From contig NW_005434671.1 of assembly GCF_000315625.1 (NCBI RefSeq), positions 538,078-602,077 of the forward strand: a stretch of DNA of 64,000 nucleotides. Direction: 5' to 3'. This DNA is from Guillardia theta CCMP2712 (taxonomy: Eukaryota; Protista; Cryptophyta). The notes under the pieces are model-generated. The model saw only the letters and a list, made by a program, of their open reading frames with translations, did not search any database and had not been told where the DNA came from. Of this stretch, positions 23,001 to 30,251 are shown piece by piece. The translations under genes were made by a program, and so were the position numbers. Numbering within the stretch: the stretch's first letter is position 1; the number at the start of each line of letters is the position of its first letter.

Positions 23001-24966
23001 AAGAAGTTGGGGACCTCGCACCATGAGGCGGTCGACTTGACCGAGACCTTGACCTCAAAGGCGACCTTCTGCCTGTTGTCGCACTCGTCGTGGAACTTTG
23101 GGCTGGCAAAGAGGTTGGCCGCAAAGACCTCGGAGACTTCGGAGAGGTCTCGGAGGTACAAACCCCTCGCGTCATCCCTTGCAGGCACTACCACGTCGAT
23201 AGGAACGTCAAATGCAACCGAACGATTCTGATGTGCCTTGAAGTGCTGGAATGCCTTGTCGACCTGGAGCAGACCAGGTCCAAGAGCCCAGGGCTCGATC
23301 CCCTCCACCTTGAGGGCTGAGTTCTGGATGACCCGCCGGATGCTCGCCGGCGTCCACGATGCCGCACCCGAGAGCAGGGCGGAGAGGATGAGAGCGAGGC
23401 CTCCACAGCAGTTGGGCGAGGACATGGACGTGCCGTTCATGAGCTGCTTCCCTTGCAGCGTCCACGTCGGCACTGGTGCGATCGCTCCTCCTGGAGCACA
23501 GATGGTGACGCCAAGGTTTCCGTCGGGGGAGGGGCCGCGGGAGGACCAGGTGTAGTTGGTGGAAGCGAGAGTCTCCCGCAGCGAGTACTCCACCTCCATC
23601 ATCCCGGGTGAAACGAAGGCCCCGACGCTGATGAAGGAGGAGGACATGCAGGCTGGAGCCCCGACGGTCGACAGGGCTGGGCCGTTGTTGCCCGCGGAGC
23701 AGACGAAGATGATGCCATGCTTGTTCACGAACTCGTTGATCAGCTCCGGCACGCGCCCGCTCTTGTCGTGCACGAAGCTCTCCCCATAGCTCAGGTTGAT
23801 CAGTTGACACCCGTTGTCCTTGGCCACCTTCAACGCGCGGATCAGGCTGGTTCCAGTCTCCATCGATCCCAGGCGCGAGTCTCCGATCTTGCACGACACG
23901 ATCTGAGCGCCGGGAGCGATGCCGTTGAGTTTCGGGTCATCAGGGAAGTTGGCGGCCACGATGCCTGGGAGAATGAAGAGACGGGTGGTCAGAAGGACGG
24001 AGGGAGGGCGAGACATCAAGGCTCAGAAGGGAAGGGCGAACGGCTCACCTGCGACGTGCGTGCCGTGGGAGCCAGCTTCGCAGACGATGGACAGGAGGTC
24101 GCCCTCTTGGAAGATGCCAACACAGACGTTGAGCAGGACAGAATGGTCCCTTACCCCCCTCACTGAGGACAGGGTGACAAACTCCCGCTCCTCCCTGAAG
24201 GTGGCCAGCGCCTTCACCTCCTGCAGATCCCCGCTCTCCTGGAAGTCGATGAGCGCTCGCCACCTCTCGCCGTCTGAGTAGACGACGCAGTCGAAGGCAG
24301 GCCCCGGATCCGAATACTGCTCCATCGCCTCCTTGAGCGCGTCCACCACCTGCTCCAGGTCCTTGCGCTCCTTCTTCTCCTTGTCATTGGGTGACTTGTG
24401 GCTCTTCTCCCACTCTCTGAGCGCCGCCTGGGCCGCCGCGACGGCCTCCTGCTGCTTCACCAGGAAGGACTCCTTCCTCTCCTCCTTGACCCTCTTGACC
24501 AGAGGGCGCGGGAACAACTCGTACGCCCTCTTCAACCCAAGATGAAACTTCCCTGACGGGCATGTCCGGCTCCCCAAGTTGAGCGTCCTCCCTGAAAGGC
24601 CCGTGATCGTGGTCTCGCCCTCCTTCAGCTCGACGACCTCGCTGGTGTCGACGTCTCCGCTCCCCGTGCAGTCCACCACGTCAATCATTTTGGGTCTCCT
24701 GCCGCACTCCAGTCAACCACCCCAACTAGCTCTCGTCTGCGCACCCGTCGGAGGTGACGAGCAGGCCTGCGGCGCCGGGGTCGACCCCCGTGTCGAAGAT
24801 CGCCACCTTGATGCCTCTCCCGTCCCATTCGGCTGCACTCACCCGCTCAGCTCCGATTCACACCAGCACAGGGTCACTCACGATGCTCCTCGATGAACTT
24901 GGAGGCCTCTGTCTCAGCCTTGGGGAGGATTCCTTCCTTGGGGAAGGGAAGCGCTTCGACGTCCAT
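20056..24966 (-). CDS. TPP2: Tripeptidyl-peptidase II (subtilase S8)
   Basis: LPKAETEA..F...[19 protein letters not shown] (Asp), SHGTHVAG (His), NGTSMSSPN (Ser), TWSSRGP, and the C-terminus GWTHW...FFPKKTLPF-stop. Confidence 0.96.
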
Positions 24967-25972
24967 CACTGCCAGCCACGAGGTCAATATGTCCTGCTGC
25001 AAGGAGCTCGCTTCCAACAGAATGGACCAAGTGAGCTATGGTTTTGTCTGAGTGAAATGAACGTGCATAGTCTGGAAATCACATGTTCTTCCTACCCACC
25101 TAATCCATGTATCATTCTTCAGCTTCGTCTACCCTGCTCGAATCATTGATTTTGCCTCTGAGTCTCCTCCCCCTCCCCTCTCCCCTCCTCTCTTCTCTCT
25201 TCTCTCTTCCCCCCCCTCTCTCTCCCTCCTTTCACTTCTCTCTCACACGCTCCCTCCCTCCCTCCCTCCTCCCTCCTCCCTCTCCCCTCTCTCCTCCTCT
25301 CTCCTCCTCTTCCCTCCCCTCCTCCCATTATCTCTTCTATTTCCCTCCCTCTCTCCTCTCCCTCCATCCTATTCCCAGCATTACTATCCCTGTGACGAAT
25401 CGGCCTTGAGTCTCGTCAGTTACCCACCGTTGCGTGCAGGTTCGATCCGTAACCGTTGTAACTGTTCCCCTTTGCGGCCCAACCAGATTCTTGATGGCTC
25501 AACTAGCGGGGGACGTGAAGAGGAGTCGAGGGGTGGACATGGCAGAGGGAGGGAGGGAAAGAAGAGACGCGAGGAAGAGCAGGCGGAGTGGAGGAGGAGC
25601 AGACAAGATGAGGAGAAGGGATGAAGGAGACGGGAGGAGCAGGGGAGGAAGCCGAGGGCGGGAGGAGGAGGAACCGACCAGGACTACGGGGAGAGTAGCA
25701 AGAGATCTAGATTGAGGTCAGGGATACGAAGCCAAGAGAGTTGGGAATGTGAAGTTTTCCATGTGTTCTGACAGAGGAAGGAAAGTTCAAGGTTAGTAGA
25801 CACGAGTAGTGTCGAGGTTCCTTCAGCGCCACTTCGCCTTGGCATGCTAGGGTGGTCCCATGACCTGGGCCCAAGTTCAACGGTAGAGTCTGACGGCAGG
25901 ACATGAACAGCACGAGTCTGTGACCGACCCTTGATCGTGACACGCTCCTTCCTCTCAGGTGCATCTGCCAGC

Positions 25973-28370
25973 ATGAGGATAGTGAGCCTGCTGCCTTCCG
26001 CCACTGAGATCCTGGCCCTCATCGGCGCCAAGGACATGCTGGTGGGCCGCAGCCATGAGTGCGACTTCCCTCCAGAGATCCTGAAGCTGCCGACCGTGAC
26101 CAACTCCCAGCTTGTCTTCCAGAGCTCTGCTCAGATCGACCAGGCCGTGCGGGAGTCCTCCAAGGCGGGGATAGACCTCTACGCTGTGGACGCGGACCTG
26201 CTGACGGCACTGAAGCCGGACCTGATCATAACCCAGGGCCTGTGCAGTGTGTGCTCCATCGATGGGACCAAGGTCCATCAGATCGTGAGGCGCATGGAGG
26301 TCCGTCCCAAGATCCTCGAGCTCAGTCCCAACACGCTGGAAGACGTTTTGCAGAACGTGGAGCAGGTCGGGGAGGCTGTGGGGCTGACAGATCGCGCTGC
26401 CGACGTGAAGCTCTACCTCAAGAAGCGAATAGAACTGGCGACGAAGACAGCAGAAGAAGGGAGGAAGAAGAGTGTCCATCCAGTCAACGTCGCCTTCCTT
26501 GAGTGGCTGAACCCCTTGTATATTGGGGGGCACTGGACACCGCAGCTGATAGAGATGGCAGGAGGCGAGCAGAAGCTGCACAACACAGCGAGGCAGAAGG
26601 AGGTGGGATTCAAGTCCTATGCCATCTCGCAGGAGGCAGTCACTCAGTCCGATCCTGACGCGATCATCATCGCCCCTTGCGGCCTAGACCTCGGTGCGAC
26701 TGAGACTGAGATCGCGAACCTGGTGCATGACCAAGACTCCGAGTGGTCGCGATGGTTCTGCGAGCTCAGAGCTGTGAAGGGGAAGCGCGTGGCTCTGGTG
26801 GACGGCAGTCAAATGTTCAACCGTCCCGGCCCGCGACTTGTCGATGCTCTCGAGTGGTTGTCCTCCTTCCTCTACCCCGACGCTCAGCAGCTCAATCCCA
26901 TCCGAAGCAGGTGAGGAATCTGCTGCCTCTCCTCTCTCAGATTCCGTGCAGTCGCTTTCCCTGGAAGGTGATGGAGCTCGCCAACCTGCCCAAGAAAGCT
27001 TGTCTCGCAACCTCGTCAGGCGACAAGGAGCAGCGAGATTCGCGTTCAGATCGGTACTCCTCGCCAGGTGTTGGGCACGCACAAGGTTGGAGCTTTCCTC
27101 TCGAGTGACTGTCTTGCAGTTGGAGGGTTTGGGCAGGACATTGAAGACTGTCACCGGCTGGCGATGGAGGTCTGAAGTTCAGTTCCCTGCTCAGGATGAG
27201 TGAGACGGCAGGCGGGGGAGGATATGTACACAGATCCTCGAACAGGCTTCATGGTCTTCACTGAGATGGCGGCTCTCAAGCGAGGAAGCTGCTGTGGCCG
27301 AGGGTGTCGACACTGCCCGTACGGGCATTGGAACGTGCAGGTACCCGGAGGAGGAAGCTGTCGCTCTTTGACTTCCGGCATGCAGAAGTTTCAAGACAGG
27401 AAGAACGTCGTTCGCAGGCCCACCCTCCTCCCACCTGTGCAGGCGAAGAGCAAGACGTTCTCGAGCTTGACCTTTGTCTTCTGGAGTGGCGGGAAGGACT
27501 CGTACATGGCGTACCTCTCGCATTGCTCTGCCATCGCTTCCACTTCGTCCGAAGCTCACGTGAGTGCTGCTCTTGCTTGCCATGGATGGCCGCTGAGTCG
27601 TGACAGGACAACGAAGTCATCCTCCTCACCACCTTTAACTCCTCCACGGGCATCATTCCCGAGCAGGATCTGCCGATTCAGAAGATCATGGATCAGGCCA
27701 AGGCTCTCGGAGTGAAGCTGCTGCTGGTCCCCCTGCCGGAGAACTGCGACAACGGTCTGCCCTCCTACCTCCCTGCATCGTCTCCCCTCCTCTTCTCACC
27801 ATTCCTGATGCACTCTCATCTCCCTCTCTTTCCTCATGCAACTTGGGTTCAGACGTGTACGTCACGCACATCCTCGAAGCCGTGGATCACGTTCTCGACA
27901 CTCTCGGCATCTCGACAAGCAAGCGGTCATGACAGACGAGTACTAAGGCGCTTCTGATTACTGCACCAGGTCTCAAGCTGTTCAGTTTGTGTTTGGCGAT
28001 TTGCATCTTCAAGACATCCAGCAATGGCGGAGGCAGAAGTTTGAAGGTGACCTCGCGTCGCCATGTAACCTTGTGACCGCCCGCATAGCAAGCGAAGGCA
28101 TCCCGTGCAAGTTCCCACTGTTCGACAAGGACTACAATGACCTGATGGACTTGCTCTGGCAGAAGCCCGTGAGCTCAAGTACCCTCGAGGAACCAGAACG
28201 CTGAGGTGTCTTGCCAGGTCACAGTGAAGATCAGCAGCGTCTGCTCCTCCCAGAGCTCCTTGAAAGTCGGCCAGACGTTCGACCGCGAGCTTGCGGAGCA
28301 GCTTCATGCCCGTGGAGAAGTCGATGCGTTTGGGGAGAAGGGCGAGTTCCACACGGAAGTCGTGCTGTGA
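25973..28370 (+). CDS. Fusion of a BtuF/TroA-like (cobalamin-type) substrate-binding domain, a Cys-rich DUF5522/C1orf53-like module and a Dph6/PP-loop ATP pyrophosphatase
   Basis: MRIVSLLPSATEI...VGRSHECDFP...FNRPGPRLVDALEWL; YTDPRTGFMVFTE...KRGSCCGRGCRHCPYGH; FWSGGKDS...FGDLHLQDIQQWR...DAFGEKGEFHTEV. Introns 26911-26951 and about 27069-27119 join the parts in frame. Confidence 0.75.
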
Positions 28371-28477
28371 GAGCCAACGACAGGGTTCTCCTGCGCGATC
28401 TCAGTCATTTATTCCACAATCAATTCATCCCTCCTTGTTATTCATTCTTTCACACTAGTGTTACAGCGGTTTTCCGT

Positions 28478-30251
28478 TTAGAAGTCCGACTCGCGAGACC
28501 CCGATCGATCTCTCCTCTCCCTCTGCCCGTTGGCGTTGTCATGTCTCTCCTTGGCCTTCTGGTATGCCATCTTCGCTCGCTCGAGATACGCTCCCTGCTC
28601 AACAACGGTAAGAAGCTGTGGGGGAGTGCGCAAGTCTGCTCACGTCATCCTCGTCTTCGCTATTGTACATGTGAGGCTGGCTGTTGAGCGGGGGAATGGC
28701 CTGCTGTGTCCGATTCAGTCCCAGCACGACCAACTCTTCCTCAACAGACCTTCTTCGGCAGGCTCTGGCAGAACTCGCTGAACTCCTCGTCGTCATGGTC
28801 ACCCACAGGTCCCTCACGCTCCTGTCAGACATTCAGCTCAAGGCAAGAGAACCTCCGACATGCTCACGTTCTCCCACGAATGGGCAGACGCCTGCAGACT
28901 GCCCCACGCGGGATGATCATTGAGGTGCATGCCAGGGCTCTTGCGGGTCGAGTAGGCCGTCCTTGGGGTCATGGGCGAGCGGCTGGGAGATCCAGGAGTC
29001 TTATCCTTCCTAGATAGAGACTTGCGGATCTTGGACTGAAGGTTTGACTCGACCTCGCCGTCCTGGTAAGCCGCTTCATCGTAGTACATCTTGGGAGACT
29101 GCTGGAGTGCATCAAGTTCAGACACTGGGAGGCGGAGAGCGATCTATCACTCACGCTTACGGCGGGCTTGCGCTTTTGCTTCTCTTCAGATCGATGTGTG
29201 GTGACAACCTTGCTAAACTTTGCGAAATCATCCTCGTCGATACCAGATTCAATTAGCTTCTTGTCGAAGTACATCTTGAAGTAGAGCAGAGCAAAGCCGT
29301 ACACTGTACAACAACCACGTCTCAGCGCACGAGAGTAGAATGTCAACTCGACAAACGAGGAAGCTGCACTCACCAGATTTCGCAATCACATCCAAGATGC
29401 AGTGGAAAATGTGATTGATGTCGTTTGAGATGACATTGGCCGCTCTGTATGAGAGAAGCCACAGCAGGGGGAACAGGAGCCAGATTCCTAAGGCGACGTC
29501 AGCGGCTGATTCAGAGACTCTCTCAGGACGTGACTCACCGAAGTAGATGAAGACTGCCGTCTTCAAGTGCCTGCGAGCCATGGTCAGCCGCCCGTCAGCC
29601 GCCCGTCCAATTGCTTACTTGAGACTCTGCTTGGCGTTGCTGTCACGGGCGCACAGCGTGAAGAAGTCGAGTCTCTGCCTGACGATGGACAAGATGAAGA
29701 CGTACGTGAAGGTGAACAGGACCATTCCCATGGCGAACCAGCAGTAGGAGAACGGAGCTACTGCCAAACTGCAAGCCACCGCGATCACGAGGCACGTGAA
29801 CACCAGGACCGCGCTAGAAATCTTGTACGGGGCATCAAGACACCAGAGCAGGTCCAAGGTAAGGAGGGGGCAGGTGGTGCAGTAGTCGACGTAAGGGATG
29901 ACTGTCAAAGGAGCGAAACCATTGTCGTTGGAGTGCGATTGCAATACCTTGGCGAAATAGGCAAGCGCACACCTGGCAGGAAAAATGTTACCCACCTTCG
30001 TCTCACTCGTTCCCGCCAATCTCACCAGAGATTGATAAAGACTGTAAGCATGTTCTGTTCCTTGAAACCATTGTAGAAGGACTCTGTACCACTGCAGGGA
30101 CGGGTGTAAGAACAGCAGCAGCAGTTTGCACAAGAAAGGATCACCCGGGGCCCTTGTATCGGAGAGAAATCACCAGCAAAATAATAAACGAGGCCGAGAT
30201 GGCAAGAAAGGAGATCCAGTTGGCGGTGATAACAGCGCTGCTCGCAACCAT
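28478..30251 (-). CDS. CCR2: Bacteriorhodopsin-like cation channelrhodopsin (cryptophyte BCCR, GtCCR2-like), 7TM domain plus long cytoplasmic tail
   Basis: Exons 30251-30145, 30091-30026, 29972-29619, 29570-29539, 29487-29374 and 29303-about 29160, plus tail exons to TAA at 28478. TM3 is IPYVDYCTTCPLLTLDLLW (P84, D87, T91, C92, D98). TM6 is IWLLFPLLWLL. TM7 is ILDVIAKSVYG (D219, retinal Lys223). The gene symbol rests on recall of the GtCCR2 sequence. Confidence 0.93.

Follow-up and report, generated by a model that had tools for sequence, protein, structure and literature searches.

The window analysed here is a stretch of 64,000 nucleotides (nt) from the cryptophyte Guillardia theta CCMP2712 (contig NW_005434671.1, positions 538,078 to 602,077 of the forward strand), and positions below are those of the window unless a contig or locus is named. 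At 25973-28370 we found a gene on the plus strand that encodes a protein of three domains: a binding domain of the BtuF type, a Cys-rich DUF5522 module and a PP-loop domain of the DUF71 type. The initial gene model was made by reading 25850-28700, and contigs of public transcript runs were compared with it over 25400-28900. The features of the gene are as follows.

25973-26910, plus strand: exon 1, start codon and complete, signal-less Peripla_BP_2 (BtuF/heme-binding-protein-like) domain, 312 codons
26952-27067, plus strand: exon 2, linker headed by the conserved FPW motif; the joint 26910/26952 was found in three runs
27120-27169, plus strand: exon 3, first part of the Cys-rich DUF5522 module
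27212-27340, plus strand: exon 4, second part of DUF5522 (exons 3-4 hold CCGRGCRHCPY), separated from exon 3 by a 42-nt intron
27386-27559, plus strand: exon 5, linker and PP-loop motif FWSGGKDS; the joint 27340/27386 was taken from the contigs
27607-27754, plus strand: exon 6, core of the DUF71-type PP-loop domain (exons 6-9 hold FGDLHL and FPLF)
27853-27925, plus strand: exon 7, core of the DUF71-type PP-loop domain
27970-28046, plus strand: exon 8, core of the DUF71-type PP-loop domain
28089-28168, plus strand: exon 9, core of the DUF71-type PP-loop domain
28218-28370, plus strand: exon 10, C-terminal part of the PP-loop domain with FGEKGEFHT (DUF71-B12 signature), and stop codon
28371-28718, plus strand: 3' untranslated region; transcript contigs of run X1 extend to 28498 and 28718
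26911-26951, 27068-27119, 27170-27211, 27341-27385, 27560-27606, 27755-27852, 27926-27969, 28047-28088 and 28169-28217, plus strand: nine introns, all GT..AG, missing from the transcript contigs

In runs X1 and X2 one contig each (2087 and 2059 nt, respectively) spanned the whole gene, and in run X6 two overlapping contigs together did so; the three runs come from three different studies. These contigs contained none of the introns and therefore derived from spliced RNA. The introns measure 41-98 nt, and eight of the nine were matched exactly by the model predicted from the sequence beforehand. The coding sequence is composed of ten exons with 1938 nt, that is 645 codons and a stop, and a script check revealed no internal stop codon. 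An in-frame TGA at 26912-26914 sits within intron 1 and is unused in the transcript contigs. Two other joints were rejected: an acceptor at 26940 leads into a stop and was not used in the contigs, and a start of exon 5 at 27443 disagreed with the contigs, which place it at 27386. Exon 5 has 19 codons more (KFQDRKN...) ahead of the PP-loop motif than the model of an original prediction, which had been made from the letters of the window alone. The transcript 5' ends were located at 25957-25972, 1-16 nt ahead of the ATG at 25973, and the Pfam match of the binding domain begins at residue 3, so that there is no room for a signal or transit peptide; the original prediction had likewise seen no signal peptide. 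The gene is thus real and expressed, and one spliced mRNA encodes 645 amino acids (aa) with no N-terminal extension. The three-domain fusion proposed in the original prediction was confirmed by contigs from the three studies, with all the quoted peptide strings present and the three splice joins exact.

Exon 1 matched Peripla_BP_2 (PF01497) over residues 3-275 with an E value of 6.9e-13 and 49 bits (cut-off 27.5). Through a search of the G. theta genome (87.1 Mb, 669 contigs), PF01497 was found in single copy, only in this gene. The AlphaFold2 (AF2) model of the domain, built from an alignment of 77 sequences, had a predicted local distance difference test score (pLDDT) of 93.7 and showed two alpha/beta lobes linked by a single long backbone helix (139-165). 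The best folds found by Foldseek in the PDB were those of RhuT, PhuT, ShuT and BhuT, which are periplasmic and bind heme, on a par with BtuF (probability 1.00), and the modelled domain can therefore be placed in the tetrapyrrole-binding branch of class III binding proteins; in such a model the fold alone cannot separate B12 from heme. Weak NCBIfam matches were obtained to IsdE, to F420-0 and to the "helical backbone metal receptor" model. Eight residues are invariant in the family (H28, C91, C94, H187, W188, C236, D277 and R288), and the FPW motif that follows the domain is part of the family consensus, being also seen in the homologues.

Exon 4 gave a full-length Pfam match to DUF5522 (PF17653; E 4.7e-22, 78 bits, cut-off 25), in which the motif CCGxGCRHCP[YF] is present as CCGRGCRHCPY. 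Four Cys and three His were invariant over 44 homologues. PF17653 is also single-copy in the G. theta genome and occurs only in the gene studied here. One diatom member of the family is annotated as "chromosome 1 open reading frame 53", after a human protein that is uncharacterised, and human C1orf53 is presumably a DUF5522 member, as that one annotation suggests. In the literature, C1orf53 was found in expression lists only, and a search for DUF5522 retrieved no paper, hence no published function. Standalone DUF5522 is rare in Pseudomonadota (4 of 401 genomes).

The DUF71 family was divided by de Crecy-Lagard et al. (2012, PMC3541065) into Dph6, with the signature EGGE/DxE188, and DUF71-B12, with ENGEF/YH188, in which the catalytic Glu and the residues that Dph6 uses for EF-2 are replaced. 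The same authors predicted that DUF71-B12 proteins (e.g. Pyrococcus furiosus PF0295) are B12-salvage enzymes and proposed a CbiZ-like role; 75 of 102 such genes adjoin B12 transporter genes and 18 of 102 adjoin cbiB (PMC3541065). Exons 5-10 of our gene are collinear with the full-length orthologues through FWSGGKDS, LLTTF, FGDLHL..WR, FPLF and FGExGEFHT. The orthologues matched PF01902 over positions 4-187 of 219 with 17-39 bits (cut-off 23.2), and the bacterial homologues with 40-48 bits. The orthologue profile aligned with residues 9-191 of P. furiosus PF0828, with the signature His opposite the catalytic E188. The AF2 model of a close bacterial DUF5522-PP-loop homologue reached a pLDDT of 91.1, and its closest PDB folds were the DUF71 enzymes PH1257 and PF0828. 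SGGKDS was found in 119 of 120 homologues and ExGEFH[ST] in 109, the exact ENGEFH in 48 and the Dph6 Glu in none; the G. theta gene itself has EKGEFHT, with Lys for the Asn of the ENGEF/YH signature. A canonical Dph6 of G. theta is encoded on another contig (C29:588328-589168, 74 bits, GEGGEYET). Dph6 identity was rejected for the domain on the His in place of catalytic Glu188 and on this separate gene. The original prediction would have been refuted by a grouping of this domain with canonical Dph6, and no such grouping was seen. The evidence supports a divergent DUF71 PP-loop domain of the DUF71-B12 signature type.

The combination of the three domains is not confined to G. theta. With the DUF5522 and PP-loop part of a truncated homologue as query, 507 proteins were retrieved and architectures were counted in the best 120, of which 75 have the three-domain layout, including proteins of Fistulifera, Nitzschia, Thalassiosira, Cyclotella, Seminavis and protists of the Marine Microbial Eukaryote Transcriptome Sequencing Project (MMETSP). 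A two-domain layout of DUF5522 and PP-loop was found in Tribonema, Ectocarpus, Phaeothamnion and the chytrid Rhizoclosmatium, and homologues in both layouts are collinear with the G. theta exons. The binding domain has thousands of relatives with 41-51% identity, whose named sources include Emiliania, Bryopsis, Parachlorella, Dunaliella, Closterium, an ochromonad, the mucoromycotes Umbelopsis and Calcarisporiella, and Planctomycetes; it stands alone (about 300-330 aa), is joined to DUF5522 (about 400-450 aa; 27 of the best 120) or is part of longer proteins. Land plants, dikaryan fungi and animals were absent from the top-ranked lists, which are no proper phyletic test, and this absence would fit the distribution of B12 use. 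Three proteins with other layouts were observed: in P0223 (911 aa), DUF5522 and PP-loop are accompanied by a DAO-type oxidoreductase and by a methyltransferase; in P0179, a Creb_binding-like region precedes DUF5522 and PP-loop; and in P0070, the binding domain and DUF5522 come before a degenerate PP-loop that lacks SGGKDS.

For bacteria, one genome per prokaryotic species was scanned with the conserved PP-loop motifs, which gave 264 relatives; 80 loci were kept, and the architectures were obtained from local profile searches of their open reading frames (ORFs). DUF5522 is fused ahead of the PP-loop domain in 50 of the 80 loci. In 23 loci the PP-loop gene has an orthologue of the algal binding domain nearby (138-323 bits), immediately upstream on the same strand in 21 of them and 2.4-4 kb away in L042 and L035. 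Single-ORF triple fusions of about 665 aa were revealed in two Myxococcota (L086:6702-8696 and L020:2857-4854). For 19 of 21 bacterial orthologues the start of the binding domain was placed no more than 14 residues after the preceding stop codon, and we therefore consider these proteins cytoplasmic too. As the parts recur fused or adjacent in hundreds of eukaryotic and bacterial sequences, the comparison supports that the three work together, in line with the single pathway that the original prediction had suggested. Two tRNA features were also seen near DUF5522-PP-loop genes: a cluster of 18 tRNA genes in 1.7 kb (L013:191-1889, Longimicrobiales) about 6 kb upstream, and, in a gammaproteobacterial metagenome-assembled genome, a selenocysteine tRNA (L047:7643-7732) directly upstream with slight frame overlap.

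Rfam scans covered 32 of the bacterial loci, and cobalamin riboswitches (RF00174) were detected in six of them with 70-123 bits. Five loci carry it on the same strand, directly upstream (70-98 bits; L073 from Novosphingopyxis baekryungensis, L085 from Erythrobacter, L072, L077 and L042), and in L070 it is divergent beside the module (123 bits). The riboswitch-linked loci occupy two separate clades of the binding-domain tree. Behind the riboswitch, the genes are ordered as DUF6580, binding protein and DUF5522-PP-loop, and in L073 the next gene encodes a TonB-dependent receptor with its own cobalamin riboswitch. The DUF6580 gene encodes a membrane protein of about 170 aa. In each of the seven proteobacterial loci (L073, 6316-6978; L042, 10444-10962; L035, L077, L085, L072 and L070) it immediately precedes the binding-protein gene, downstream of the riboswitch wherever a same-strand riboswitch was present. 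No FecCD/ABC genes were seen beside the binding-protein gene in loci L003, L073 and L042. DUF6580 is a candidate inner-membrane corrinoid transporter; its identification as BtuM was dropped, for there was no sequence match to any PDB chain, BtuM included. CbiC, a marker of corrin-ring synthesis, was found in none of ten carrier genomes and CobS in four of the ten; the absence of CbiC indicates that the regulated operon serves organisms that use B12 but do not produce it. The kind of clustering with B12 uptake or salvage genes that marks DUF71-B12 was found for proteobacterial homologues only. The B12 connection of the module is supported by this independent line of comparison, as some of the bacterial neighbourhoods, in which the original prediction had proposed to look for such a link, carry cobalamin riboswitches ahead of the operon.

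The G. theta genome contains METH (C43:461675-462650) and METE was not detected in it, so G. theta should depend on B12. CbiZ (154 bits) and CbiB (254 bits) are adjacent on one strand at C15:72248-73975, and CobS (C4:227707-228498), CobU (C4:841733-842423) and CobT (C108:75156-76226) were also identified; judged from these matches, the salvage set is near-complete for cobamides. A CbiZ-CbiB fusion is known in diatoms, and Fistulifera solaris is a diatom reported to lack the algal salvage genes CbiZ-CbiB, CobU, CobT and CobS (algal salvage genes: Vancaester et al. 2020; Helliwell et al. 2016). The three-domain gene is present in F. solaris and in bacteria without CobS, and its role is therefore probably broader than remodelling of the lower ligand or rebuilding of the nucleotide loop.

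Considering the domains, their recurrence and the riboswitches together, we propose a cytosolic three-part module of signal-less BtuF-like protein, DUF5522 and His-type DUF71 domain that most likely handles imported cobamides inside the cell, a reading to which we give somewhat more credence than doubt. The three-domain protein is a strong candidate for a missing step in cellular vitamin B12 handling. In the mechanism that we envisage, the binding domain would hold a corrinoid in the cleft between its lobes, lined by the invariant His and Cys. The PP-loop domain may then spend ATP, giving AMP and PPi, to activate a carboxyl or amide group of the ligand, adenylating it in the case of the carboxyl, as the chemistry of its family would suggest, and the activated group could serve amide formation, exchange or hydrolysis. 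DUF5522, with its Cys4/His set, might bind a metal and couple the other two domains. In bacteria, we might speculate that the cytoplasmic binding protein also traps B12 entering via DUF6580. A more specific proposal, possible although we hold it to be doubtful, is that the triad forms an undescribed cytosolic cobamide-processing system of bacteria, algae and early-diverging fungi, which would trap corrinoids after import for their ATP-driven repair or conversion; hydrolysed side chains might be re-amidated, for instance, or a different path might lead to cobyric acid or away from it.

Several observations weigh against the handling of cobamides. The PP-loop exons of G. theta, taken one by one, fell under the Pfam cut-off of PF01902 (E 0.06-0.14, 12-13 bits). 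The riboswitches were found in proteobacterial loci only, and the about 25 other scanned loci had none and were surrounded by housekeeping genes. Loci without a riboswitch include those of the Nitrospinota-like group, Gemmatimonadota, Myxococcota and Balneolaceae, the last also without DUF5522, and around the Planctomycete stand-alone binding protein, as in the Nitrospinota-like group and Balneolaceae, we saw unrelated housekeeping genes only. B12 context was likewise not seen at three standalone DUF5522 loci. The fold of the binding domain matches heme-binding proteins as well as BtuF, and its invariant Cys and His could form a plain metal site. The DUF71-B12 function is itself a prediction only. 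In bacteria, DUF71-B12 and CbiZ are mutually exclusive (PMC3541065), and both are present in G. theta, as they are in some archaea.

Of the other explanations, the likeliest is that the module handles another tetrapyrrole or an iron chelate, such as heme or a siderophore, which would be captured in the cytosol and modified at one carboxylate by the PP-loop domain. The top Foldseek matches to RhuT, PhuT, ShuT and BhuT, the weak IsdE and F420-0 matches and the lack of a B12 marker at most bacterial loci all point this way. We consider it unlikely, since cobalamin riboswitches stand directly upstream at five loci from two clades of the binding protein, the PP-loop domain has the DUF71-B12 signature, and heme or iron genes were not seen beside the module in the examined loci.

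Slightly less likely again, in our judgement, is a TroA-like receptor for a metal ion (Zn, Co or Fe) or an Fe-S protein, with H28, C91, C94, H187 and C236 as ligands and the PP-loop enzyme dependent on the metal or delivering it, without a tetrapyrrole. The invariant Cys and His appear to lie in loops after beta-strands of both lobes, like the ligands of TroA and ZnuA, DUF5522 is likewise rich in Cys and His, and there is the weak match to the "helical backbone metal receptor" model. However, the closest folds are those of tetrapyrrole binders and not of ZnuA or TroA, and carriers that lack corrin-ring synthesis (CbiC in 0 of 10) would have no purpose for a cobalt supply switched by B12; an operon of B12 users thus counts against a cobalt-supply role.

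B12 riboswitches also repress B12-independent isozymes. In a further reading, the riboswitch would serve DUF6580 only or mark a B12-independent back-up pathway, the substrate of the PP-loop domain would be a macromolecule (a tRNA base, or a side chain of a protein as for Dph6), and the two remaining domains would be scaffolds. Dph6, QueC, NcsA and TilS act on proteins or RNA precursors, and such folds were among the matches. This we regard as improbable, a shade more so than the metal receptor: the catalytic Glu and the residues used by Dph6 for EF-2 are replaced, a canonical Dph6 is encoded separately in the genome, and the persistent fusion to a small-molecule binding fold favours a small ligand. 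That the fusion is an artefact, and that translation stops at 26914 in one of what are really two or three genes, is scarcely conceivable: the in-frame TGA after exon 1 does lead ORF-based callers to a 313-aa protein (P0001), but single contigs span all exons, the three studies agree, one mRNA crosses all nine introns against the two transcripts envisaged, and the reading frame runs on into the FPW motif and DUF5522 just as it does in the 75 fused homologues.

The history of the gene was followed in the binding-domain tree, in which G. theta pairs with P0126 (label "Tamp", which we guess to be the cryptophyte Teleaulax). The clade that contains this pair is strongly supported; its other members are green algae, mucoromycotes, a haptophyte and ochrophytes, and five sequences from Planctomycetes are nested in it. 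The proteins of diatoms make up a separate clade, whose sister group is the Myxococcota triple fusions L086 and L020, with a support of 98 in the Shimodaira-Hasegawa-like approximate likelihood ratio test (SH-aLRT). The tree suggests that the fused gene has at least two histories; it was rooted at the midpoint only, and therefore no donor can be named. For the cryptophyte copy, the tree gave no support to the acquisition from bacteria considered in the original prediction: this copy belongs to the broad eukaryotic clade with nested Planctomycetes, and only the diatom copies are sister to bacterial fusions, those of Myxococcota. Taken as a whole, the interpretation given in the original prediction is partly supported.

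In the window, a CT-rich stretch of low complexity (25107-25409) is located between the gene and a neighbouring ORF on the minus strand (24023-24688), possibly an exon of a tripeptidyl-peptidase II-type subtilase.

More than half of the surveyed algal species require vitamin B12 from prokaryotes, and the components of algal B12 handling described so far, to our knowledge, are CBA1, a protein of the cell surface, and several salvage genes of bacterial type. No paper describing the three-domain family was found, recent algal B12 papers are silent on the protein, and a search for literature linking diphthine with cobalamin gave nothing relevant. Part of the B12 idea is already covered by the DUF71-B12 hypothesis of 2012, in a paper that does not mention algae or diatoms (PMC3541065). 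Judged by comparative genomics, the G. theta gene appears to be a eukaryotic, fused variant of this predicted B12-related enzyme family, with new and independent comparative support. Members of the family occur widely: in algae that use B12, in fungi of the chytrid and mucoromycote groups, and in bacteria that are not B12 producers. The prediction of 2012 thereby becomes a concrete and testable system, whose carriers include the culturable Novosphingopyxis baekryungensis DSM 16222 and genetically tractable diatoms, and the association gives a first functional lead for DUF5522 and DUF6580. If the proposal is true, a cobamide-processing triad would fill a gap in the processing of imported B12 by B12-dependent algae, and DUF5522, including its animal relatives, would gain a first function, in B12 trafficking.

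Among known systems, DUF71-B12 is the closest. It shares with the studied clade the SGGKDS motif, the ExGEF/YH signature in place of EGGE/DxE188 and the genomic linkage to B12 uptake genes. The studied clade differs by its N-terminal DUF5522 and its occurrence in eukaryotes, and its partner, as a fused domain or a separate protein, is the signal-less BtuF-like protein instead of the BtuFCD transporter; it also scores far under the cut-offs of the NCBIfam models PAB0415, TTX_0299 and Dph6. Dph6 (PF01902; 3RJZ, 3RK0, 3RK1, 2D13) has the same fold and ATP-binding motif and, presumably, the adenylation of a carboxylate in common with our domain, and is distinguished by Glu188. The C-terminal RidA-type domains known from eukaryotic Dph6 proteins (PMC3541065) were not found in the G. 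theta gene. With the DUF5522 family the gene shares the CCGxGCRHCPY motif, in a module that is here internal. The class III binding proteins BtuF, PhuT, ShuT and RhuT likewise consist of a pair of Rossmann-like lobes with a long helix connecting them (Foldseek E about 1e-13 to 5e-17, template modelling score about 0.8 on the target), whereas identity to the algal domain is about 20% and the algal family has its own set of H28, C91, C94, H187 and C236. The periplasmic BtuF of the BtuFCD importer is exported; the algal domain has no signal peptide, like 19 of 21 bacterial orthologues. Finally, the algal CbiZ-CbiB, CobU, CobT and CobS are, like the three-domain protein, bacterial-type B12 proteins of algal nuclei and are all present in G. 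theta, while their folds are unrelated to it.

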